This document shows positions 1,022-11,968 of a stretch of DNA of 64,000 nt, piece by piece. How positions within the stretch are numbered: position 1 is the stretch's first letter; each line of letters starts with the position of its first letter. Below the pieces are notes generated by a model. The model made no database searches, had not been told where the DNA came from, and saw nothing but the letters and a program-made list of their open reading frames with translations. A program made the position numbers and the translations under genes. This stretch comes from Ostrea edulis (Eukaryota): positions 4,712,001-4,776,000 of the forward strand of contig NC_079171.1 of NCBI RefSeq assembly GCF_947568905.1. Reading direction: 5' to 3'.

Positions 1022-1651
1022 GTTTTTTTTTTTTTTTTTTTTTTTTTTTTCCACATATATCAGTCTTTAATTTCAAAATACATTACTATTTCGGGGTAAA
1101 GTCTCCGCAGAGACCCCCTTATAATCTTTACCTAGGGTGCCAGGGGCCCCTTGGATTAGATGTATATAGGCATACATATACATATATATAAATTTATCAT
1201 ATAAATTTCTACATATAGAAAACACAAACATATATGCATACATACAAACACACACACATATAATATACTGTTATATAACAAAATTTATTAACATGTTATG
1301 GCAAAAAAGGTTCTTATTTTAACGGAAAAACCAACAACACAACAATATAATTATGTACATAAAGAACCTGAAACTGCCATATGCGGGGTTACCAATTCAA
1401 AAGTTCATATCACAACCCCCATGGCAGCACTATAGGAGGACAGGACCCCTCCTCATAGTGGGAACTTTTTGCAAAATACCAGTATATAAAAGGTTTATTA
1501 CAAAATTTTATTTGATATAGAAATATAGTTGTTTGTAATCAATTCAAATTGTTCAAAATAAACTCACATTGTAACATAGTTAAAAATGTGCATAGACAGA
1601 TATTTGTCAGGTTTCATATTATAAAAAGTCATACCTGCAAAGGTGTATAAA

Positions 1652-2617
1652 TTACAATTTGTCTTTAATTGCTTTCATAACTTTAGCATATTTTTTATCC
1701 TGAATTTTTGTGTACACTTCTGTATAAAAATTCAATTTACTTTTTATGTGGTTACATATTTCTTGAGGTTTTTCGTCTTTGTTATCTAATCTACAATACA
1801 TTTTATACTTGTATATTTTACAGGCAATAAGAGATATTATGCTATTCAAAAAGAATGTCTTTTCATTGTTTTCATAGTAAAATCCTATCACAATTGTTTT
1901 CCACGATATATCAAATTTTAAAATTTGTTTAACAATGTCCCATATATGAGAAACATTTTTACATTTTAAGATAAGATGTTCATTGTTTTCTTTAGCATCT
2001 CTGCAAAAGACACAAAAATCATTTTCTACTATCTTCCATTTCTTCAGCAATTCTCTGTTACACAATAGATTATTTAATAATTTATAATTAAATTCTGATA
2101 TACTTCTGTCTCTTATGGATAAGATTTTTTGTTCATAAATAGATTTCCAAGCCGTTTTTGTTATTTCAAAAACCTTTCCGTAATATGTTTGGTGTAATGG
2201 AGGTATAAATTTTTCATGACAAAGAATTTCGTAAATCAACTTTGAATTGATATCACACACTTTAACATGTCCTTTACATAATAAATCGTATGATGTACTC
2301 CCATGAAAAATGTTTTCGTATCGTATATTTGAATATTCATAACTTTTGAAGGTTTTTGTTATAACTGTTTTTATAATCATATATTCACACATCCAGTTTT
2401 TTTTACATATAAGTTTGTCATCAAACCATTCCAAAGGTTTTATGCCATTTTCATTTACAATATCATTCAAAAATTTAAAACCGCTCCTCAGCCAATTATG
2501 AAAAAATATTGGCTTGTTTTTGTACATAAAATTTTTATTACACCACAACGGTTCTTTCAATAATGCATTCAGATAAAATTGTTTTTTATTTTTTTTTACA
2601 TTCGTTGAAAAATACAA
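1652..2617 (-). CDS. LINE ORF2 C-terminal part (zf-RVT-like region, CxxC...EHLxxxC), separated from the main ORF2 by a frameshift
   Basis: FNYKLLNNLL...WKIVENDFCVFC...ENNEHLILKC...W is typical of the L1/Tx1 ORF2 C-terminus. The frame change falls in the A-run at about 2582-2597. Confidence 0.85.
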   Translation of the reverse strand: MYFSTNVKKNKKQFYLNALLKEPLWCNKNFMYKNKPIFFHNWLRSGFKFLNDIVNENGIKPLEWFDDKLICKKNWMCEYMIIKTVITKTFKSYEYSNIRYENIFHGSTSYDLLCKGHVKVCDINSKLIYEILCHEKFIPPLHQTYYGKVFEITKTAWKSIYEQKILSIRDRSISEFNYKLLNNLLCNRELLKKWKIVENDFCVFCRDAKENNEHLILKCKNVSHIWDIVKQILKFDISWKTIVIGFYYENNEKTFFLNSIISLIACKIYKYKMYCRLDNKDEKPQEICNHIKSKLNFYTEVYTKIQDKKYAKVMKAIKDKL

Positions 2618-5399
2618 GCATTTCCTTGTAGAATAGAGGAAAATGTTCCATTATTTGATAATCATTTGATTTCGTAATATTTGTTTTACATAGATATTCA
2701 AAATCAAAGTCTCTTTCTTTGCACAAACTATCTACAAAAAAGAATAGAGAGTTTCTCTCGCTTGAAATCCTGTTTATCCAAGATACTTTTATGGATTTTA
2801 ATTTCAAAGATACATCGACAATTCCAATGCCTCCCTTTAGGACATTTCCAATCTGTGTATTTCTTTTAATTCTATCTCTTTTGTTCCATATATAGTTATA
2901 TAACAAACTTTGAAATTTCTTAATTACTTCTTCATTTGGAAAGCTCAGAACTGATCCAACATATATAATCTTTGATATTGCTAGGCTATTGATGACACAA
3001 ACTTTACCAAAAATGGTTAGTTTTCTTTTTTTCCATGATTCAAACAGTTTTTCTAAGTCATCTACAATTTTTGTCCAATTGTTTTTATAACATATTTCTT
3101 TGTTGTGTCCTATATAAATTCCAAGAGTTTTTATGCTATCATTGTTTACGTTAACATTTCTAATTTGTTTATAATGATATTTGTGAGGACCCGTTAATAT
3201 ACATTCTGTTTTTGACATATTTAAATACATACCCGAAACATTGCTGAATTTTGCTATGACTTTTAAAGAATGTTCTAGAGAGGTTTCATCTTTAAGAGGA
3301 AGAGTACAATCATCTGCATGTTGTATAATCTTAATACTGTTAGTCATTCCTGGTTTTTGAAATCCATTAATATTTGAATTCGATCTAATATTTACCGCTA
3401 ATATTTCTATAACAAAAAGAAATAATATTGCAGAGATGGGACATCCTTGTCTTATACCTCTCTGCATATTGCATGTTTTGGACATCCATCCATTATTTTT
3501 TATTTTAAATATAGGTTTATTGTATAGTATGTTGACCCATTTGAGAAAGTTTTCGCCAAAGTTAAATTTTTTAAGAACTTTCGTCATGAAGTTCCATTCC
3601 ACAGAGTCGAACGCTTTTTGGAAATCAAGAAATAACATTATTGATTCTATATCATTTTCTTCACAATATTCAAAAATATCAATAATTAACCTTGCATTCA
3701 GAGCTATATTTCTCCCTTTTATATAAGCTGATTGATTAACATGTATTGCTTTATCCAACACTTTTTGTAGTCTATTAGCTAAAAGAAAAGCTATTATTTT
3801 ATAATCAGTATTTGTAAGACTAATAGGCCTATAATTGTTAAGACTCTGCGGGTCTCCTTTTTTAAATAAGAGAGTAATTAAAGATAGTCTTTGTGAATAT
3901 GTCATTGTATACTTTTGGAAGATCTCTTGAAGAGTGCAATAATAATGTTGTTTTATGTTTTCCCAGAAAGTTTGATAGAATTCACACGGTAATCCATCAG
4001 ATCCGGGTGATTTATTTTTTTTCATAATGAATACTGTTTCTGTACATTCTGATAGTGAGGGAAGGGTGTCTAATTCATTTTTTTCTTCATCATTTAGACT
4101 ATATTCTAATTGTATATTACTTAAATATTCATTCACTTTATTATCATTTTCATTATTTGATGTATACAATTTTTCATAAAAATTGCATGTAGAATCTAAT
4201 ATTTCATCTTCATCAAAAACTGTACCTTTTTCATTTTTTAATGATTTTATCACATTTGATATTTGTCGTCTCTTTTCTAAATTTAAAAAATAAGAGGTAT
4301 TTCTTTCTCCCTCTTCAATCCATTTTGCCCTTGATCTTACCTGTGCACCTTTTGCCTTTTTGTTTATTAATTCTGTCAATTCATTTTCTAATTTTCTTTT
4401 TCTATTCATATCTATTTTTTCATATGGCAAGTCTTCTATCTTACTTATTTCTCCTTGAATAGAATTTATTTTGTTTTTGTAAGATTTAGATATATTTTTC
4501 GATAAATTTATACATTTTGTTTTTATATTCCTTTTCAAATTTTCCCATGAATCTAGTGCATTTTCTTTATCGAAATTATAGTTTTTCAGGAATGTATTCA
4601 TTTCGTTCATGAAGGTTTCATTTTCAATTAAAGATGTGTTAAATTTCCAGTATCCTGGACCTCTAAGGTTTTCATTTACAATCAAAGAAAAAATTAAACA
4701 CTTATGATCAGACATCCTAGTACCGTTTGAGTGTGAACCAGGAATGTTTTGAAGCCTTATATTTTCACATTGAAAACAAAAGGTATCGGATAGTAAAATA
4801 TAATCTATTCTACTTGTTGGGATATTTACTCCGTTACACCATGAATATCCTTTTTTTCCGCTTTTCATAGTTTTCCACATGTCGTGTAAATCGAGCTTGT
4901 TCAGTAGTTGTTTTAAAATTATAACACTTTTATCTGATTCATTTTCTGTTGAGCAATTAAGGTCACCACATATCAATAGATTATCAAAATTTGCTGTATA
5001 TTTACTAATCCATTCTTTAGCCCGTTTAAAAAAATCACATCTATAATTGATATCGTTTGGAGCATATAAATTAACTAATGTAATAATTTTTTCATCATAT
5101 GCTATGTTAACCATGAGTTTCCTGCCTTCATTAGATTTATGTATATTTAGTATTTTGAAATTCAAATCTTTATTAAATAATATTGAAACTCCTCTACTGA
5201 AAATTGAATCGGAAAAGCAATGTATTGATATACCTTTCCACCTTGCATCATAATTTAGTACATTTTTTTCAATATAGTGGGTTTCTTGCATAAATATTAC
5301 ATCAAAACAGCTATCATTAATCCAGGTATAAACTTTTATACGTTTTTCTGCAGTATTTAAACCCCTGCAGTTCACTGAAATAATATTTAACTTGTTCAT
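2586..5399 (-). CDS. LINE ORF2: apurinic-like endonuclease + reverse transcriptase
   Basis: APE motifs SVNCRGL, MQETH, NLYAPN, GDLN, SRIDY, SDH; RT motifs KSPGSDG, YRPISL, LDFQKAFDSV, GIRQGCPIS, QHADD. Confidence 0.96.
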   Translation of the reverse strand: MNKLNIISVNCRGLNTAEKRIKVYTWINDSCFDVIFMQETHYIEKNVLNYDARWKGISIHCFSDSIFSRGVSILFNKDLNFKILNIHKSNEGRKLMVNIAYDEKIITLVNLYAPNDINYRCDFFKRAKEWISKYTANFDNLLICGDLNCSTENESDKSVIILKQLLNKLDLHDMWKTMKSGKKGYSWCNGVNIPTSRIDYILLSDTFCFQCENIRLQNIPGSHSNGTRMSDHKCLIFSLIVNENLRGPGYWKFNTSLIENETFMNEMNTFLKNYNFDKENALDSWENLKRNIKTKCINLSKNISKSYKNKINSIQGEISKIEDLPYEKIDMNRKRKLENELTELINKKAKGAQVRSRAKWIEEGERNTSYFLNLEKRRQISNVIKSLKNEKGTVFDEDEILDSTCNFYEKLYTSNNENDNKVNEYLSNIQLEYSLNDEEKNELDTLPSLSECTETVFIMKKNKSPGSDGLPCEFYQTFWENIKQHYYCTLQEIFQKYTMTYSQRLSLITLLFKKGDPQSLNNYRPISLTNTDYKIIAFLLANRLQKVLDKAIHVNQSAYIKGRNIALNARLIIDIFEYCEENDIESIMLFLDFQKAFDSVEWNFMTKVLKKFNFGENFLKWVNILYNKPIFKIKNNGWMSKTCNMQRGIRQGCPISAILFLFVIEILAVNIRSNSNINGFQKPGMTNSIKIIQHADDCTLPLKDETSLEHSLKVIAKFSNVSGMYLNMSKTECILTGPHKYHYKQIRNVNVNNDSIKTLGIYIGHNKEICYKNNWTKIVDDLEKLFESWKKRKLTIFGKVCVINSLAISKIIYVGSVLSFPNEEVIKKFQSLLYNYIWNKRDRIKRNTQIGNVLKGGIGIVDVSLKLKSIKVSWINRISSERNSLFFFVDSLCKERDFDFEYLCKTNITKSNDYQIMEHFPLFYKEMLVFFNECKKK

Positions 5400-5457
5400 G
5401 CGTATGACTGACTAGCGGTTTTTTTTTTTTTTTTTTGGTTTTTTTTGTTTGGTAGAC

Positions 5458-6684
5458 TTAACTCTGTTTTTTGCCCTGCTTGTTTCTTGTTGATCTAGAG
5501 GAATTGTTGGTAGCTGAATTTTCGTCCGTACGCTGCAATTTGGCTGCCATGCCGTCGAGGATACGTCCAAGCTTATTTTCACCTGGCCAATGTTGCATTA
5601 GAGTATGAGATGTTCCGGTCACGTTCAGCCCGCTACCCCAATAAGTATCCCATGTCGATTCCACCAGAATATCGGATTTTCTGATTTTTTTTAAAGCACT
5701 TCTGAATTGTGAACAATGCTGTAGTTTAGATTCCAGTATTTCCCGCATAACGGAGTCTTTAGATGTAATCCAAGCATCAGATTCCAGGACCTGACCTCCT
5801 ACACGTTTGGCATCTAAGGCGGTTTCAGCTTTACTTACGGCTTCTGCACGGTTAAGATCACCAGAACGTAAGGATTTGATGTGTTGGAAAGCATGTTCGG
5901 CTGAAGGATATGTTTGCCCAAAAACCTTTAACTCAGTAGGGAAGAAATTTGAAAGAGGGTTATCTTTTCCAGAGAAGCATACTATGTCCTCCTGGTGAGT
6001 GACATATGATCTGCATTTATCCGATCCCGGAAAGTGACTTGGTAGCTTGCATATTCTACAACTCTGCTCGAATTCGCAAGCATTTTTGTAATGGTCATCT
6101 GCCCAGCAGTTTGTGCACTGCTTCTTTCGTTCCCGTAGGGGTTGGCCTTTGTGAGATATGGTACAGCGTAAACCTGCACATGACGCAGAGCGTGGAAGGA
6201 ATTTTCCATTCTCTAGAGGCGACATATACACAAAACGATTTCCATTTAATATTTCAGTCATTCTGTGGGTTTTAGGATGTCTGATTTTTTCATATTTGAT
6301 ATCACTTGTTAATTCTACTCCTAGACCTAAGCCTTTGAGCATCTTTTTAATACATGAATCTTCAACCGATAGAGGTATACCTTTAATTAGGACTCGAACA
6401 ACTTTCTCATCAGGAGAGTCTGTACCCGCAGAGAATGGGTTCGTGTCATAAACCTGGATTGATCTGCTTCCAAGTGAGAATCCTTCAGTAACTAATTTCG
6501 ATCTACTCTCCGCAGACTTTATGTAGATCCTCCACAGATCTCTATCTCTTTGTACACATATCACATCCGAGACTGTTGCGCTCGCGGCTTCTGCAATGTC
6601 AAAGTCGGTGAAATATTTACTTTTTGTTGTTTGAATGTCTCTGTTCCGCATATAAACTGGCTTAAGAGTTTGTGTCCACTCCAT
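5458..6684 (-). CDS. LINE ORF1p: RRM-like region, two CCHC zinc knuckles, C-terminal NADAR (YbiA-like) domain
   Basis: Knuckles CTNCWADDHYKNAC and CRICKLPSHFPGSDKC. NADAR motifs PLSNFF, YPSAEHAFQHIK, VMREILESK, LVESTWDTYWGSG and GENKLGRIL at aa 234-384 (about 5533-5985). Confidence 0.88.
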   Translation of the reverse strand: MEWTQTLKPVYMRNRDIQTTKSKYFTDFDIAEAASATVSDVICVQRDRDLWRIYIKSAESRSKLVTEGFSLGSRSIQVYDTNPFSAGTDSPDEKVVRVLIKGIPLSVEDSCIKKMLKGLGLGVELTSDIKYEKIRHPKTHRMTEILNGNRFVYMSPLENGKFLPRSASCAGLRCTISHKGQPLRERKKQCTNCWADDHYKNACEFEQSCRICKLPSHFPGSDKCRSYVTHQEDIVCFSGKDNPLSNFFPTELKVFGQTYPSAEHAFQHIKSLRSGDLNRAEAVSKAETALDAKRVGGQVLESDAWITSKDSVMREILESKLQHCSQFRSALKKIRKSDILVESTWDTYWGSGLNVTGTSHTLMQHWPGENKLGRILDGMAAKLQRTDENSATNNSSRSTRNKQGKKQS

Positions 6685-6984
6685 AATTTCGTTATCTTAG
6701 ACACTATGAGACTCTGAAACGCCGTTCGAAAAACACAGGCACCGTGAGTAGATTGTGAACACCTATTCACGCTCAGCACAGGTGTAAATTCACAAAAACA
6801 GTCCAAAAACAAGATCACCTTGAGAAATTGTGTCAAGAGTCAAGAAATATATACACTATCTATCCAAACTCCAAACTCTGAGAAAATCGCATTAATTTCT
6901 CGAATTAAAGAGTGAAAATGACGGTCAAATTGACGGAGCAAAAAAAGTACGTCCGTACCTTAGCTCATCACGTGACTTCCTCAC

Positions 6985-7815
6985 GAATAAGCTGTTCAAG
7001 GTAGACAGGAGTCCTCTCTGGGTGAATGGTTTGTCTTCTAATTGGTTGTTGAAGGTAAAGGTGTCTGATCCCATGACAAACCAAGGCTCTGCTGTGTTGG
7101 TAAAGCATCTGATCCAATGCTGACTTGAGTCAAGCTTTTCTCCAAGTCCTGAGTGGGAAATGCATTCATAACTGCTACACTGTTAGATGCGATCTTGTGT
7201 AATCTAATGTTCCCTTGCTCCTTCAATACTTGCTGAGTTTCCTTCACCAGCTCGATAGCTTCATCTATGGTTGGAACAGAAACCAGTCCATCATCGACAT
7301 AGAAGTTCCTTTCAACGAAATCCCTAACATCTCTGTCACCGTTTTCTACTGCCTTACGTAATCCATACGTAGCTACAGCTGGTGATGGAGTATTGCCGAA
7401 CACATGCACTCGCATGCGGTAGTCTATCAGCTCATCCTCTGGGTTGTTGTTGCGATACCATAAGAATCGGAGGAAATCCCGGTGCTCTTCCTTTACATAA
7501 AATGAATAGAACATTTGTTCTATGTCAGCTATCACTGCAATCTGATCTCTACGGAAACGAAGCAAGACTCCGAGCAGACTATTTGTTAAGTTAGGACCGG
7601 TCAACAAGACACTGTTAAGCGATATTCCCTGGTACACCACTGACGAGTCAAAAACACCTCGAATCTTATCGGGCTTCTTAGGATGGTATACCCCGAAGAG
7701 TGGCAGGTACCAGCATTCCTTGCCTTCTGAAATTGGTGGTGCGACTTCTGCTGCTCCTTTATCTATAACACCCTTCATAAAGGTAACCATATGGTCTCGC
7801 TTAGTTGGATTTTAC
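6985..7815 (-). pseudogene. BEL/Pao LTR-retrotransposon RT fragment (part duplicated at 1-115)
   Basis: WYLPLFGVYHPKKPDKIRGVFD, ADIEQMF, HVFGNTPSP, FYVDDGL; continues after a frameshift as KPFTQRGLLSTLNSLF and is truncated there. Confidence 0.92.
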
Positions 7816-9531: not shown

Positions 9532-11968
9532 ATGTTTCTCTGCTTCAAATGTAATCAGGAGTTTAGACTTTTTTCAAGATTAATTAGCCATTATCGCTTT
9601 ACTCATAGTCATGAACAAGGATTTTTTTTTAACTTGTTCAGTTGAAGGCTGTGAAAAACAATATCACAATGTTGACTCTTACTTAAAACATGTCAAAAGA
9701 AAACAAATTGTTTTATCAGCAACATTTCTCTAAGTACAGAGATGAAAATAGATCAGGTGATATTGCTAATTGCCTTACTGAAGTACATGAAATGGATGAT
9801 GAACTTTTACAAGATAATATAGGTACCGAAGAAATTCAAGATTTTTCTCAAGTTGATTTCAAAAGAAAATTTGGAATCTTCTTCATACAACTTCGCGAAA
9901 GCTATAAATTACCATCAAATGTTTTACCTGTCATTATTAATGAGATCTTAGATATGATAAGCCACCACCAAGCAAGTGTTTCTAAATCTATGGACTCTTT
10001 ACTTGCTAATTATGACCTAGATGGTAACTTGGTGGATAGGTTGAGGCAAATCCTTAATGAAAAATCGGAAATTGAAAATGCATTAAGCAACTTAGATTCT
10101 GAATACAAAATCAACAAGTTTGCAAGATTCAGTCTAAATTATGTTAAACCCATTGAATACAGACCTGAAAGAAATCAGAATGACACATACCAGTATGTGC
10201 CAATTCTTGAAACAATTAAAAATCTTTTAGATCATGATGATATTTTTGCCTATGTTTTGAACAATCATAAATCAACTGATGGAATTTTAAGAGATTTTTG
10301 TGATGGTGACATTTACTCTGTAAATCCTTTATTCAGAGAAAACCCAAATGCTATACAGATTATGCTGTTTTTTGATGAATTCACAGCAGCAAATCCCTTA
10401 GGACATCAAGTAAAAAATTACAAAATTGCTGGTGTCTACATGCTCTTTGGAAATCTTCCACCAAAGTTTAGGTCCCAGTTACATTGTATTCAACTTGTAG
10501 CTCTTTGCCAATCATCTTTATTGAAAAGGAATGGTTTTTCAAAAATCTTAGAACCTTTAATCAATGATCTAAAGTTATTAGAAAATGATGGGATTGTTGT
10601 TTCAAAAGATCAGATAGACCACCGATTGTTAGGAACTGTGAGTGTGGTAATTGCTGATAATCTTGGGGCTCATGGCTTAGGTGGCTTTATGGAGTCATTT
10701 ACAACTCTCAGAAATTGTTGGTTTTGTTTTATTGATAAACACCATATGCAAAACAAATTAGATTGTCAAAATCTACATATGCGAACTGTTCAAATGTGCA
10801 ATGCCCAAACCAGAATTGTAGAGGATGATCCTTCTCTTTGCTCAGTGTATGGAGTTAAATTCTCATCCCCACTGAATGAACTAAGGCACTTTCATGTAAT
10901 AGGCGGAATGCCATCTGACATTGCTTATGATCTTTTTGAAGGGGTTGTTTGTGATGTGATGACAAATGTGATAAAATATTGTGTGTCTCAGGATTTCTTT
11001 CGTCTTGAGGAGTTAAATGAGGCTATAATGCAATTTAAATTCTCAGAGATGGATAAAAGTAATAAACCAGCTAAAGTCAATGAAGTTCTTAGAAAATTAA
11101 GGGTCCATCAGTCAGCAGCTCAAACTTGGTGTTTTGCAAGATTTTTACCTTTGTTTGTTGGTTCAAAAGTTTCTGTAGATGACGAAAATGGGAGACATTT
11201 CTCTTGCTACGAGATCTGTTGTTTTATGCATGTGCACCAGCTTTGGGTAGGGGTCATATTTTATCCATGTCAGATATAATCAATGAATTCCATGAGAGGT
11301 ACCGAAGATGTTTTCCTGATGATTCATTGAAACCAAAATTTCATTATACTTTACATTATCCTTTTTTGATGTGTCAGTTTGGACCACTTCTTCACTTGCA
11401 GACTTTACGTTTTGAGGCAAAGCATAACTATTTCAAAGAACTGGTTTTTAGAACAAAGAATAGAAAAAACATTTGCAAATCATTAGCAGAGAGACATCAG
11501 TTTTACCAAAGTACATTTAATACTGGAGGAAAATTCTTATCTAGTAGTAGGGTGGACTCAACAGGTGGCACTCCTGTTCCTTTAGTGATGCTAAATAATG
11601 ACTTTCAGCATCTTTTAGCTGGAATTGTACATGGGGATGAAGTTTTTCTGTGTAATTCTGTCAAATTTCTGGGAATTACATACTGGAAAGATACATGTGT
11701 GGTCACCGGTTTAGAGGGATTTCAATATCAGTTCTGCAAGATTGTACATAGTGCCATTATTCAGGGTCAGGCACTCCTGTTATGCCAAAGACTTAGAACA
11801 GTTGATTTTGAGAGGCATTTCCATGCTTTTGCAGTTGAAGACACAGATCATTATGAAGTGTACAAAGTTTCAGATATTCCAGAAACAAACCCACTTGGAA
11901 TTTATGATCACCCTAATCCTCTCTCTAGGTATAAATTGGTTGTTCTAAAGTACAAAGTTTTAGTTTAA
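9532..11968 (+). pseudogene. EnSpm/CACTA transposase, frameshifted
   Basis: N-terminal C2H2-like fingers (frameshifted before 9690); FFDEF..ANPLG, ADNLGAH..GGF..SF...CWFC, HDLFEG-like YDLFEG, PKFHY..HYP, FGPL..TLRFEAKH; second frameshift near 11200. Confidence 0.88.

Follow-up and report, generated by a model that had tools for sequence, protein, structure and literature searches.

We identified a LINE retrotransposon in Ostrea edulis whose ORF1 protein (ORF1p) carries a YbiA-type NADAR domain, placed after two RRM-like domains and two zinc knuckles. It lies in the window, which is the whole stretch of 64,000 nucleotides analysed here (contig NC_079171.1, positions 4,712,001 to 4,776,000 of the forward strand). 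The fusion recurs in diverged subfamilies of the oyster genome and in Pinctada imbricata, and the residues expected to form the active site are largely kept. The domain may serve the element as an eraser of ADP-ribose linked to nucleic-acid bases.

The LINE copy and its class

The element occupies 5,960 bp on the minus strand, and its parts are as follows.

1023..6982 (-): full-length copy of a LINE of the L1/Tx1 group, 5,960 bp, with ends common to the full-length copies
6685..6982 (-): 5' UTR of about 298 bp; its 5' end is common to more than 15 copies, within a few bases
5458..6684 (-): ORF1, an open frame of 408 codons plus stop
5400..5457 (-): A-rich spacer of 58 bp between ORF1 and ORF2, read directly from the sequence
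2586..5399 (-): first 937 codons of ORF2, with endonuclease and reverse transcriptase (Pfam Exo_endo_phos and RVT_1)
1652..2585 (-): rest of ORF2, which continues in a different frame and contains the zf-RVT part (zf-RVT being matched in intact copies)
1023..1651 (-): 3' UTR of about 600 bp with a 28-A tail at 1023-1050, read from the sequence

The copy in the window has a frameshift in ORF2, inside an A-run near position 2590, and 3 of the 7 copies examined have an uninterrupted ORF2 of 1,248 codons. In the intact ORF2 (1,248 residues), Pfam matched Exo_endo_phos, RVT_1 and zf-RVT, the last at residues 1083-1153. The match of ORF2p to the L1 ORF2p in PDB has an E-value of 7e-82 over residues 4-870, against 1e-12 for R2 proteins, and ORF2p is thus far nearer to L1 ORF2p than to R2. 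The element is a poly(A) LINE of the L1/Tx1 group, where the label “Tx1” is taken over from Repbase, which so names the relatives in C. gigas (as cited by PMC12477816 and PMC10294476).

The A-tail length varies among copies, and the A-rich form of the spacer is confined, among the subfamilies compared, to the young subfamily. Insertion into a single specific target sequence is typical of many Tx1 elements. For the element described here, target-site duplications of 13-16 bp were found in four other copies, each at a different and unrelated site starting with A, while a clear duplication was not seen around the copy in the window. Besides, the 5' flanks of 15 copies are mutually unrelated. Taken together, the unrelated flanks and duplication sites indicate that insertion is L1-like and not site-specific.

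Architecture of ORF1p

From its N-terminus, ORF1p (408 aa) consists of two RRMs, two CCHC knuckles, a YbiA-type NADAR and a short basic tail.

6148..6660 (-): two tandem RRM-like domains, about aa 9-77 and 95-179, each beta-alpha-beta-beta-alpha-beta in the AlphaFold2 (AF2) model
6013..6117 (-): two CCHC zinc knuckles, aa 190-224 (C190-C203 and C209-C224), invariant in 8 subfamilies
5533..5985 (-): YbiA-type NADAR, aa 234-384 (Pfam match 241-382), recognized by profiles, sequence and fold
5461..5532 (-): end of the last NADAR helix and basic low-confidence tail, aa 385-408 (AF2)

The AF2 model of the whole ORF1p was built on 61 relatives and has a mean pLDDT of 91. In Foldseek, its N-terminal half matched the tandem RRMs of UP1, U2AF65 and HuR with E-values from 4e-5 to 1e-3. 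None of the knuckle residues (C190, C193, H198, C203, C209, C212, H217 and C224) changes in the 8 subfamilies, and relatives of ORF1p are matched by Pfam zf-CCHC. The L1 Transposase_22 domain gave no Pfam match in ORF1p. With an RRM fold followed by knuckles and without Transposase_22, ORF1p is of the RRM plus CCHC (“type I”) kind. The first-pass annotation of this DNA had placed the NADAR C-terminal of an RRM-like region and zinc knuckles, an order borne out by the tandem-RRM fold matches and the invariant CCHC residues. The C-terminal tail has pLDDT below 50 at residues 393-407, and its length and sequence differ among subfamilies.

Identity of the NADAR domain and its active site

Pfam NADAR (PF08719) matched residues 241-382 with an E-value of 3.5e-20 and 73.3 bits (gathering score 35.1), and NCBIfam TIGR02464, the YbiA-type N-glycosidase domain, scored 76 bits (cut-off 73.7). 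We then compared the NADAR part with known structures. By phmmer it matched YbiA (2b3w, E 2e-9) and the NADAR 8bau (E 2e-5), and in Foldseek the top PDB folds for the AF2 model were E. coli YbiA (2b3w; TM 0.72 on the target) and, in second place, the Phytophthora NADAR with ADP-ribose (8bau; TM 0.69, rmsd 3.4). The first-pass annotation had claimed a complete NADAR at 5533-5985 (aa 234-384) and had proposed a profile and structure comparison with NADAR/YbiA as a check; the two profile matches, the AF2 model (pLDDT 91), the YbiA fold at the top and 2b3w and 8bau as best PDB matches all agree with it. The motifs that it had listed (SNF, EHxFQxxK, LVE, DxxWGxG and GxNxLG) are likewise all present in the ORF1 translation, as SNF at 245-247, EHAFQHIK at 263-270, LVE at 340-342, DTYWGSG at 346-352 and GENKLG at 368-373.

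The active site was mapped through the phmmer alignment to 8bau, whose chain numbering is offset by two, and the roles of the P. nicotianae NADAR residues were taken from PMC11543638.

E263, equivalent to E43: distal ribose
K270, equivalent to K50: phosphate and adenine contacts; essential
K293, equivalent to K75: near the active site, direct contact with ADPr absent
G296, equivalent to G78: adenine contact through the backbone
E342, equivalent to E125: the glutamate that defines the YbiA family
D346, equivalent to D130: pyrophosphate contact via water
W349, equivalent to W133: pyrophosphate contact

Mutagenesis or ligand-contact support exists for the residues equivalent to E263, K270, E342 and W349 (PMC11543638). 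The Glu and Lys of ExxFQxxK correspond to E43 and K50 in the P. nicotianae NADAR and to E88 and K95 in the E. coli C7 NADAR. We counted these positions in 113 near-complete ORF1 NADAR domains, which are otherwise about 40-50% identical, and it turned out that E263 is kept in 110 (97%), K270 in 105 (93%), E342 in 103 (91%) and W349 in 112 (99%). Unconserved catalytic acidic residues together with a lack of activity had been named at first pass as a sign against the proposal, and these counts for E263 and E342 speak for their conservation. In the representatives of 8 O. edulis subfamilies the catalytic equivalents are invariant, except D346, which is one position off in one subfamily. Across 45 lineage representatives, 6 have E342 replaced (by T, H, A or P), and K270 is lost in a few. 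The equivalent of the phosphate-binding R79 also varies, being G in the window copy and K, N or R elsewhere.

At the E125 position, Glu is characteristic of the YbiA family, Asp of the BC4488/DarG1 family and His of phage NADARs (PMC11543638). By its sequence, the ORF1p domain is of the YbiA type, neither of the DarG1 type (Asp) nor of the phage type (His), its active site is intact, and catalysis is plausible. A DarG1-type antitoxin (BC4488 family) was considered as well and ruled out, with Glu instead of Asp at this position and a LINE ORF2 instead of DarT1 as the neighbour.

Copies, subfamilies and origin of the fusion

A six-frame search of the O. edulis genome with ORF1p scored 103 places (621 candidates), and at least about 85 of the matches are full ORF1-NADAR frames. 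With the NADAR profile, the six-frame search scored at least 150 places (341 candidates). At least eight O. edulis subfamilies (45-68% identity) retain the NADAR fusion, mostly without stops. In addition to the young family, the search recovered groups with about 68, 57, 52, 50, 49 and 48% identity, spanning residues 5 to about 400. Molluscs are among the NADAR-bearing animals, and the roles of animal NADARs have been stated to be unknown (PMC11125620). From the at least 150 NADAR matches and at least about 85 full ORF1-NADAR frames, it follows that much of the “mollusc NADAR” signal may be LINE ORF1p and not host genes.

As separate observations, a free-standing-looking NADAR frame is located on O. 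edulis chromosome 2, and one annotated O. edulis gene model joins an opsin to a NADAR piece.

Two relatives were found in Pinctada imbricata, both annotated only as NADAR-domain proteins, and an ORF2-sized frame lies downstream of one of them. Independent Logan contigs contain ORF1 together with an ORF2 of 1,249 aa. As for taxon range, the Atlas gave no label finer than Mollusca. Whether the fusion goes beyond one copy had been raised at first pass, and the many copies, at least eight subfamilies and the Pinctada relatives settle that it does.

For the origin of the fusion, we ran an exhaustive search with the N-terminal 234 residues, which gave 1,110 cluster representatives at E <=0.001. Of the 150 representatives listed, 147 were new, and a family-specific HMM found NADAR in 59 of these; Pfam NADAR was found in 50 of the 96 long representatives among the matches listed. 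On a tree of the N-terminal module with 146 rows (106 with NADAR), the NADAR trait takes 2 changes, against a mean of 35 with shuffled labels, and the well-supported branches require just one. This distribution, in which related sequences share labels, fits an origin of the fusion in one event, or nearly so, within an old lineage of bivalve LINEs. The tails of the NADAR-less relatives are unconserved, and the idea that they are degenerate NADARs was rejected (hhalign probability 0.06%). A search for the domain donor with the NADAR part alone returned fragments of the same ORF1 family and nothing else.

Selection and recent activity of the element

A dN/dS comparison across copies had been suggested at first pass, and the closest usable pair for it is the window copy and a relative with 78% identity. 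For the NADAR part of this pair, dN is 0.12 and dS is about 2.2 (saturated), giving an omega of about 0.06 or lower; most subfamily pairs have bounds only and no dN/dS figure, because their synonymous sites are saturated. Within the young copies, the distinct ORF1 variants comprise 12 synonymous and 15 non-synonymous ones (12 of 27, where the neutral expectation is about a quarter), and in the NADAR part 5 of 8 distinct variants are synonymous and 3 non-synonymous. Judged by these substitution patterns, the NADAR fusion has evidently been maintained by purifying selection across many diverged subfamilies.

The full-length copies are 99.3-99.7% identical to the window copy, and at least 17 further genome copies have 100% (rounded) ORF1 amino-acid identity without stops, which indicates that the family was very recently active. 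Contig fragments with at least 99% identity, which extend over portions of ORF2 and over ORF1 at its NADAR end, are present in 3 small RNA-seq libraries of one study. They weakly suggest that the element is transcribed, and DNA carry-over could also yield such fragments.

Possible function of the ORF1p NADAR

NADARs are known to remove ADP-ribose from guanine N2 in DNA (PMC11543638). Reversal of G-ADPr, on DNA as well as on RNA, is common to the four NADAR families, and YbiA-type enzymes reverse C-ADPr too (PMC12945103). NADARs are the only hydrolase family acting on RNA G-ADPr and are inactive on phosphate-end ADP-ribosylated RNA; E. coli YbiA is weaker on G-ADPr RNA than a DarG1-type NADAR, and the advantage of the more active NADAR was attributed to nucleic-acid binding (PMC11833690). 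Since nucleic-acid binding goes with higher NADAR activity, an RNA-coating ORF1p would supply this property to the domain fused to it. CARP-1 homologues, which are guanine ADP-ribosyltransferases, are found mainly in Bivalvia (PMC12945103), and the orphan NADARs of phages act in counter-defence by undoing DarT1 marks (PMC11825919).

We propose that the ORF1p NADAR is an eraser of base-linked ADP-ribose that is tethered to the LINE RNP. ORF1p would coat the element's own RNA through the RRMs and knuckles, a nucleic-acid chaperone module, and this module would keep the NADAR in place on the RNA of the LINE, as well as on nascent cDNA or target DNA. The tethered domain would cleave the N-glycosidic bond that attaches ADP-ribose to guanine (or cytosine) bases, a reaction that other NADARs carry out in vitro, and the removal of ADP-ribose would keep the template and the product readable for reverse transcription. 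The writer opposed in this way would be a base-directed ADP-ribosyltransferase, either from the host (CARP-1-like) or from a microbe. We give this reading a probability of about 45%, held at that level because no writer was found in the genome. Also counted against the eraser is that the domain is nearest to the YbiA/riboflavin-type class (TIGR02464), whose sole long-established activity is on small-molecule riboflavin intermediates, and that the R79 equivalent is not conserved.

In the search for a writer, the O. edulis genome showed no match to Pfam Enterotoxin_a, DarT, Scabin-like or ADPrib_exo_Tox, which were silent in the control genomes too, the exon-by-exon six-frame profile search being weak for ADP-ribosyltransferases. 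A genome search with PF01129 found one secreted R-S-ExE ART on chromosome 7. Its relatives are oyster proteins, one of which is named arginine ADP-ribosyltransferase, its profile is nearest to HopU1 and Vis and not to pierisin or Scabin, and its AF2 model has a pLDDT of 35. By its relatives and profile it looks like an arginine-specific protein ART, and we rejected it as a base-directed writer. The wider proposal, that bivalves use nucleic-acid ADP-ribosylation to restrict retroelements or viruses and that an eraser is found on bivalve LINEs for this reason, must be regarded as doubtful.

The main rival to the eraser is that the NADAR is active, but on an RNA-processing or NAD/ADP-ribose-derived substrate of the LINE life cycle, for instance a 5' end that bears a modification or a derivative of ADP-ribose that arises in RNA handling, so that it opposes no host ADP-ribosyltransferase. 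RNA processing has been proposed for the NADARs of Ectocarpus Gypsy and C. gigas Tx1 elements (PMC12477816), SNA-3, an essential NADAR protein of nematode trans-splicing, makes such a role thinkable, and this role would agree with the finding of no writer in the O. edulis genome. However, NADARs are inactive on RNA that is ADP-ribosylated at phosphate ends (PMC11833690), an RNA-processing substrate is defined for no NADAR, and the nearest precedent on mobile elements, that of the phage NADARs, is counter-defence. We consider a role in RNA handling possible but on the unlikely side.

The replacements of E342 in 6 of 45 representatives, the few losses of K270 and the variable R79 equivalent would also agree with a non-catalytic NADAR fold, which binds an ADP-ribose/NAD-like ligand, nucleic acid or a host factor, or aids ORF1p assembly. 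This is improbable in view of E263, K270, E342 and W349, which are kept in 91-99% of the 113 domains, a pattern typical of a working active site.

It is still harder to believe that the NADAR is an N-glycosidase for small molecules, either riboflavin intermediates (YbiA/COG3236 type) or another metabolite, with no action on nucleic acids. In favour of this, the hallmark Glu of YbiA-type enzymes is present, and the domain matches TIGR02464, “riboflavin biosynthesis intermediates N-glycosidase”, slightly above the cut-off (76 vs 73.7 bits). Against it, a conceivable benefit to the LINE is absent, more than 100 diverged proteins have the NADAR covalently joined to two RRMs and a pair of knuckles, and YbiA-type NADARs themselves act on nucleic acids with G-ADPr and C-ADPr (PMC12945103).

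That the fusion is unreal, produced by assembly or gene calling or confined to one chimeric copy, can practically be dismissed: no support for it was found beyond the opsin-NADAR gene model, which shows that chimeric models exist around such elements, whereas a single unbroken frame is present in at least 17 further copies (100% identity) and at least eight subfamilies, the Pinctada imbricata fusion has ORF2 downstream, and the Logan contigs carry ORF1 with the 1,249-aa ORF2.

A selfish element in which the protein that coats its RNA has retained, despite deep divergence, a catalytically intact eraser would be a strong hint, suggesting that base ADP-ribosylation of RNA or DNA occurs in bivalves and matters for retrotransposition. 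If the wider proposal of such a restriction in bivalves is true, the ORF1p NADAR would be the first counter-defence enzyme on a eukaryotic transposon that erases base-linked ADP-ribose. It would also give the first physiological role in animals for nucleic-acid ADP-ribosylation and for NADARs.

Comparison with known systems

Other enzyme or reader add-ons of ORF1p, as reportedly described by Khazina and Weichenrieder in 2009, include an esterase in CR1/L2-type ORF1p and PHD fingers. Like the NADAR, these are accessory domains on an RRM/zinc-knuckle ORF1p, but they differ in fold and chemistry, and we know of none that is tied to ADP-ribose. The NADAR is a third kind of accessory domain on ORF1p, now well documented, and exemplifies what appears to be a single ancient capture.

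In sequence and fold class, the closest systems are E. coli YbiA (2b3w) and the myxobacterial YbiA-like YarT antitoxins (PMC11125620). YbiA-type enzymes reverse G- and C-linked ADP-ribose and are able to neutralise an ART toxin (PMC12945103, PMC11125620). Unlike the ORF1p NADAR, YbiA and the YarT antitoxins are bacterial and single-domain, with about 28% identity to it, and YbiA also acts on riboflavin intermediates.

The phage AdfN (T4-like; PMC11825919) and DarG1 (PMC11543638) resemble the proposed role, as erasers of guanine ADP-ribosylation on mobile elements that stand alone without a cognate toxin. They differ in having His or Asp where ORF1p has E342, in being free-standing and not fused to RRMs or knuckles, and in that their writer, DarT1, is known. 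By analogy, the orphan NADARs of phages offer the best functional parallel for the ORF1p NADAR.

Among retrotransposons, Gypsy LTR elements of Ectocarpus have also captured a YbiA-family NADAR and kept it conserved, but at the N-terminus of Pol and not on ORF1p, in another element class and another kingdom (PMC12477816). This was apparently a separate acquisition, in which the nearest relatives are bacterial (PMC12477816).

The Tx1 LINEs of C. gigas likewise have an oyster as host, are of the same class as the element described here and bear a domain of this kind on ORF1p. The first-pass annotation, made without searches, had known of no NADAR among the ORF1p add-ons. This has to be corrected, as YbiA-family NADARs apparently occur on the ORF1 proteins encoded by several Tx1 LINE families of C. 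gigas listed in Repbase (PMC12477816). In that paper of 2025 on Ectocarpus transposons, the C. gigas fusion occupies one sentence and a supplementary alignment, with RNA processing suggested as its role, and no other description of a NADAR-ORF1 fusion was found in the literature searched. The C. gigas families, known here from their description, and the O. edulis element almost certainly belong to the same LINE lineage. The C. gigas report does not go into domain architecture, the active site, a census of copies, tests of selection, spread across taxa or any connection with ADP-ribosyltransferases (PMC12477816). New here are the full architecture, the active-site map, the O. edulis census, the point that many “mollusc NADARs” may be LINE proteins, the finding in Pinctada, and the evidence that the fusion had a near-single origin and is under selection.

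Base composition and spacer of the LINE

The LINE in the window is one element with two compositions, divided sharply in GC content between its two reading frames. In every subfamily examined (window 1652-6684, together with L031, L039, L043, L045, L047 and L051, the loci compared as other subfamilies of this NADAR-bearing LINE), the GC content is 41-47% for ORF1 versus 27-29% for ORF2, and within ORF1 the higher value holds for the RRM/knuckle part as well as for the NADAR half. The following segment lies between the two frames:

Window 5400-5457: ORF1-ORF2 spacer, an A-rich run in the young subfamily of the window copy

Spacers in the other subfamilies range from 11 to ~180 bp and are unrelated to this A-rich run.

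NADAR-less relatives and other NADAR matches

In the tree of the N-terminal module, 40 of the 146 rows are RRM-RRM-knuckle ORF1 proteins without NADAR, which form a sister set (representatives P0120-P0230). The C-terminal tails of these proteins, 110-250 residues long, are unconserved; they gave zero Pfam matches and have no kinship to NADAR.

Elsewhere in the O. edulis genome, the gene model P0070 (contig 5) bears the name “opsin, blue-sensitive-like” and combines a 7tm_1 domain with part of a NADAR domain sharing 99% identity with the window ORF1. It is probably an annotation chimera that takes in a truncated LINE copy. Another NADAR match (89.8 bits) is located on contig 2 at 33348575-33348964, where the open frame reaches just 181 aa, and may represent either a stand-alone NADAR gene of the host or a piece of a LINE.

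Surroundings of the LINE

Two stretches with frames of weak transposon similarity lie near the window copy:

Window 7038-7790, minus strand: frame of a retroelement fragment with a weak RVT_1 match
Window 9690-11968, plus strand: a pair of overlapping frames, 529 aa and 254 aa long

The LINE adjoins this fragment of a different retroelement (5' of 6982), or is inserted within it. The window copy shows no clear target-site duplication. The 529-aa frame has a weak match to the tnp2 transposase family, which scores under the cut-off, and the plus-strand frames are probably a DNA-transposon remnant.

An ADP-ribosyltransferase on contig 7

The search for a writer enzyme that the NADAR would oppose gave a single ADP-ribosyltransferase (ART):

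L057 1165-2121 (contig 7, ~83.42 Mb): ADP-ribosyltransferase, PF01129, single exon, with signal peptide

Its AF2 model gave no usable fold (pLDDT 35). The protein carries the motifs R / S-S-S / E-x-E and is kept in Saccostrea and Crassostrea, and the profiles nearest to it are those of HopU1 and Vis.
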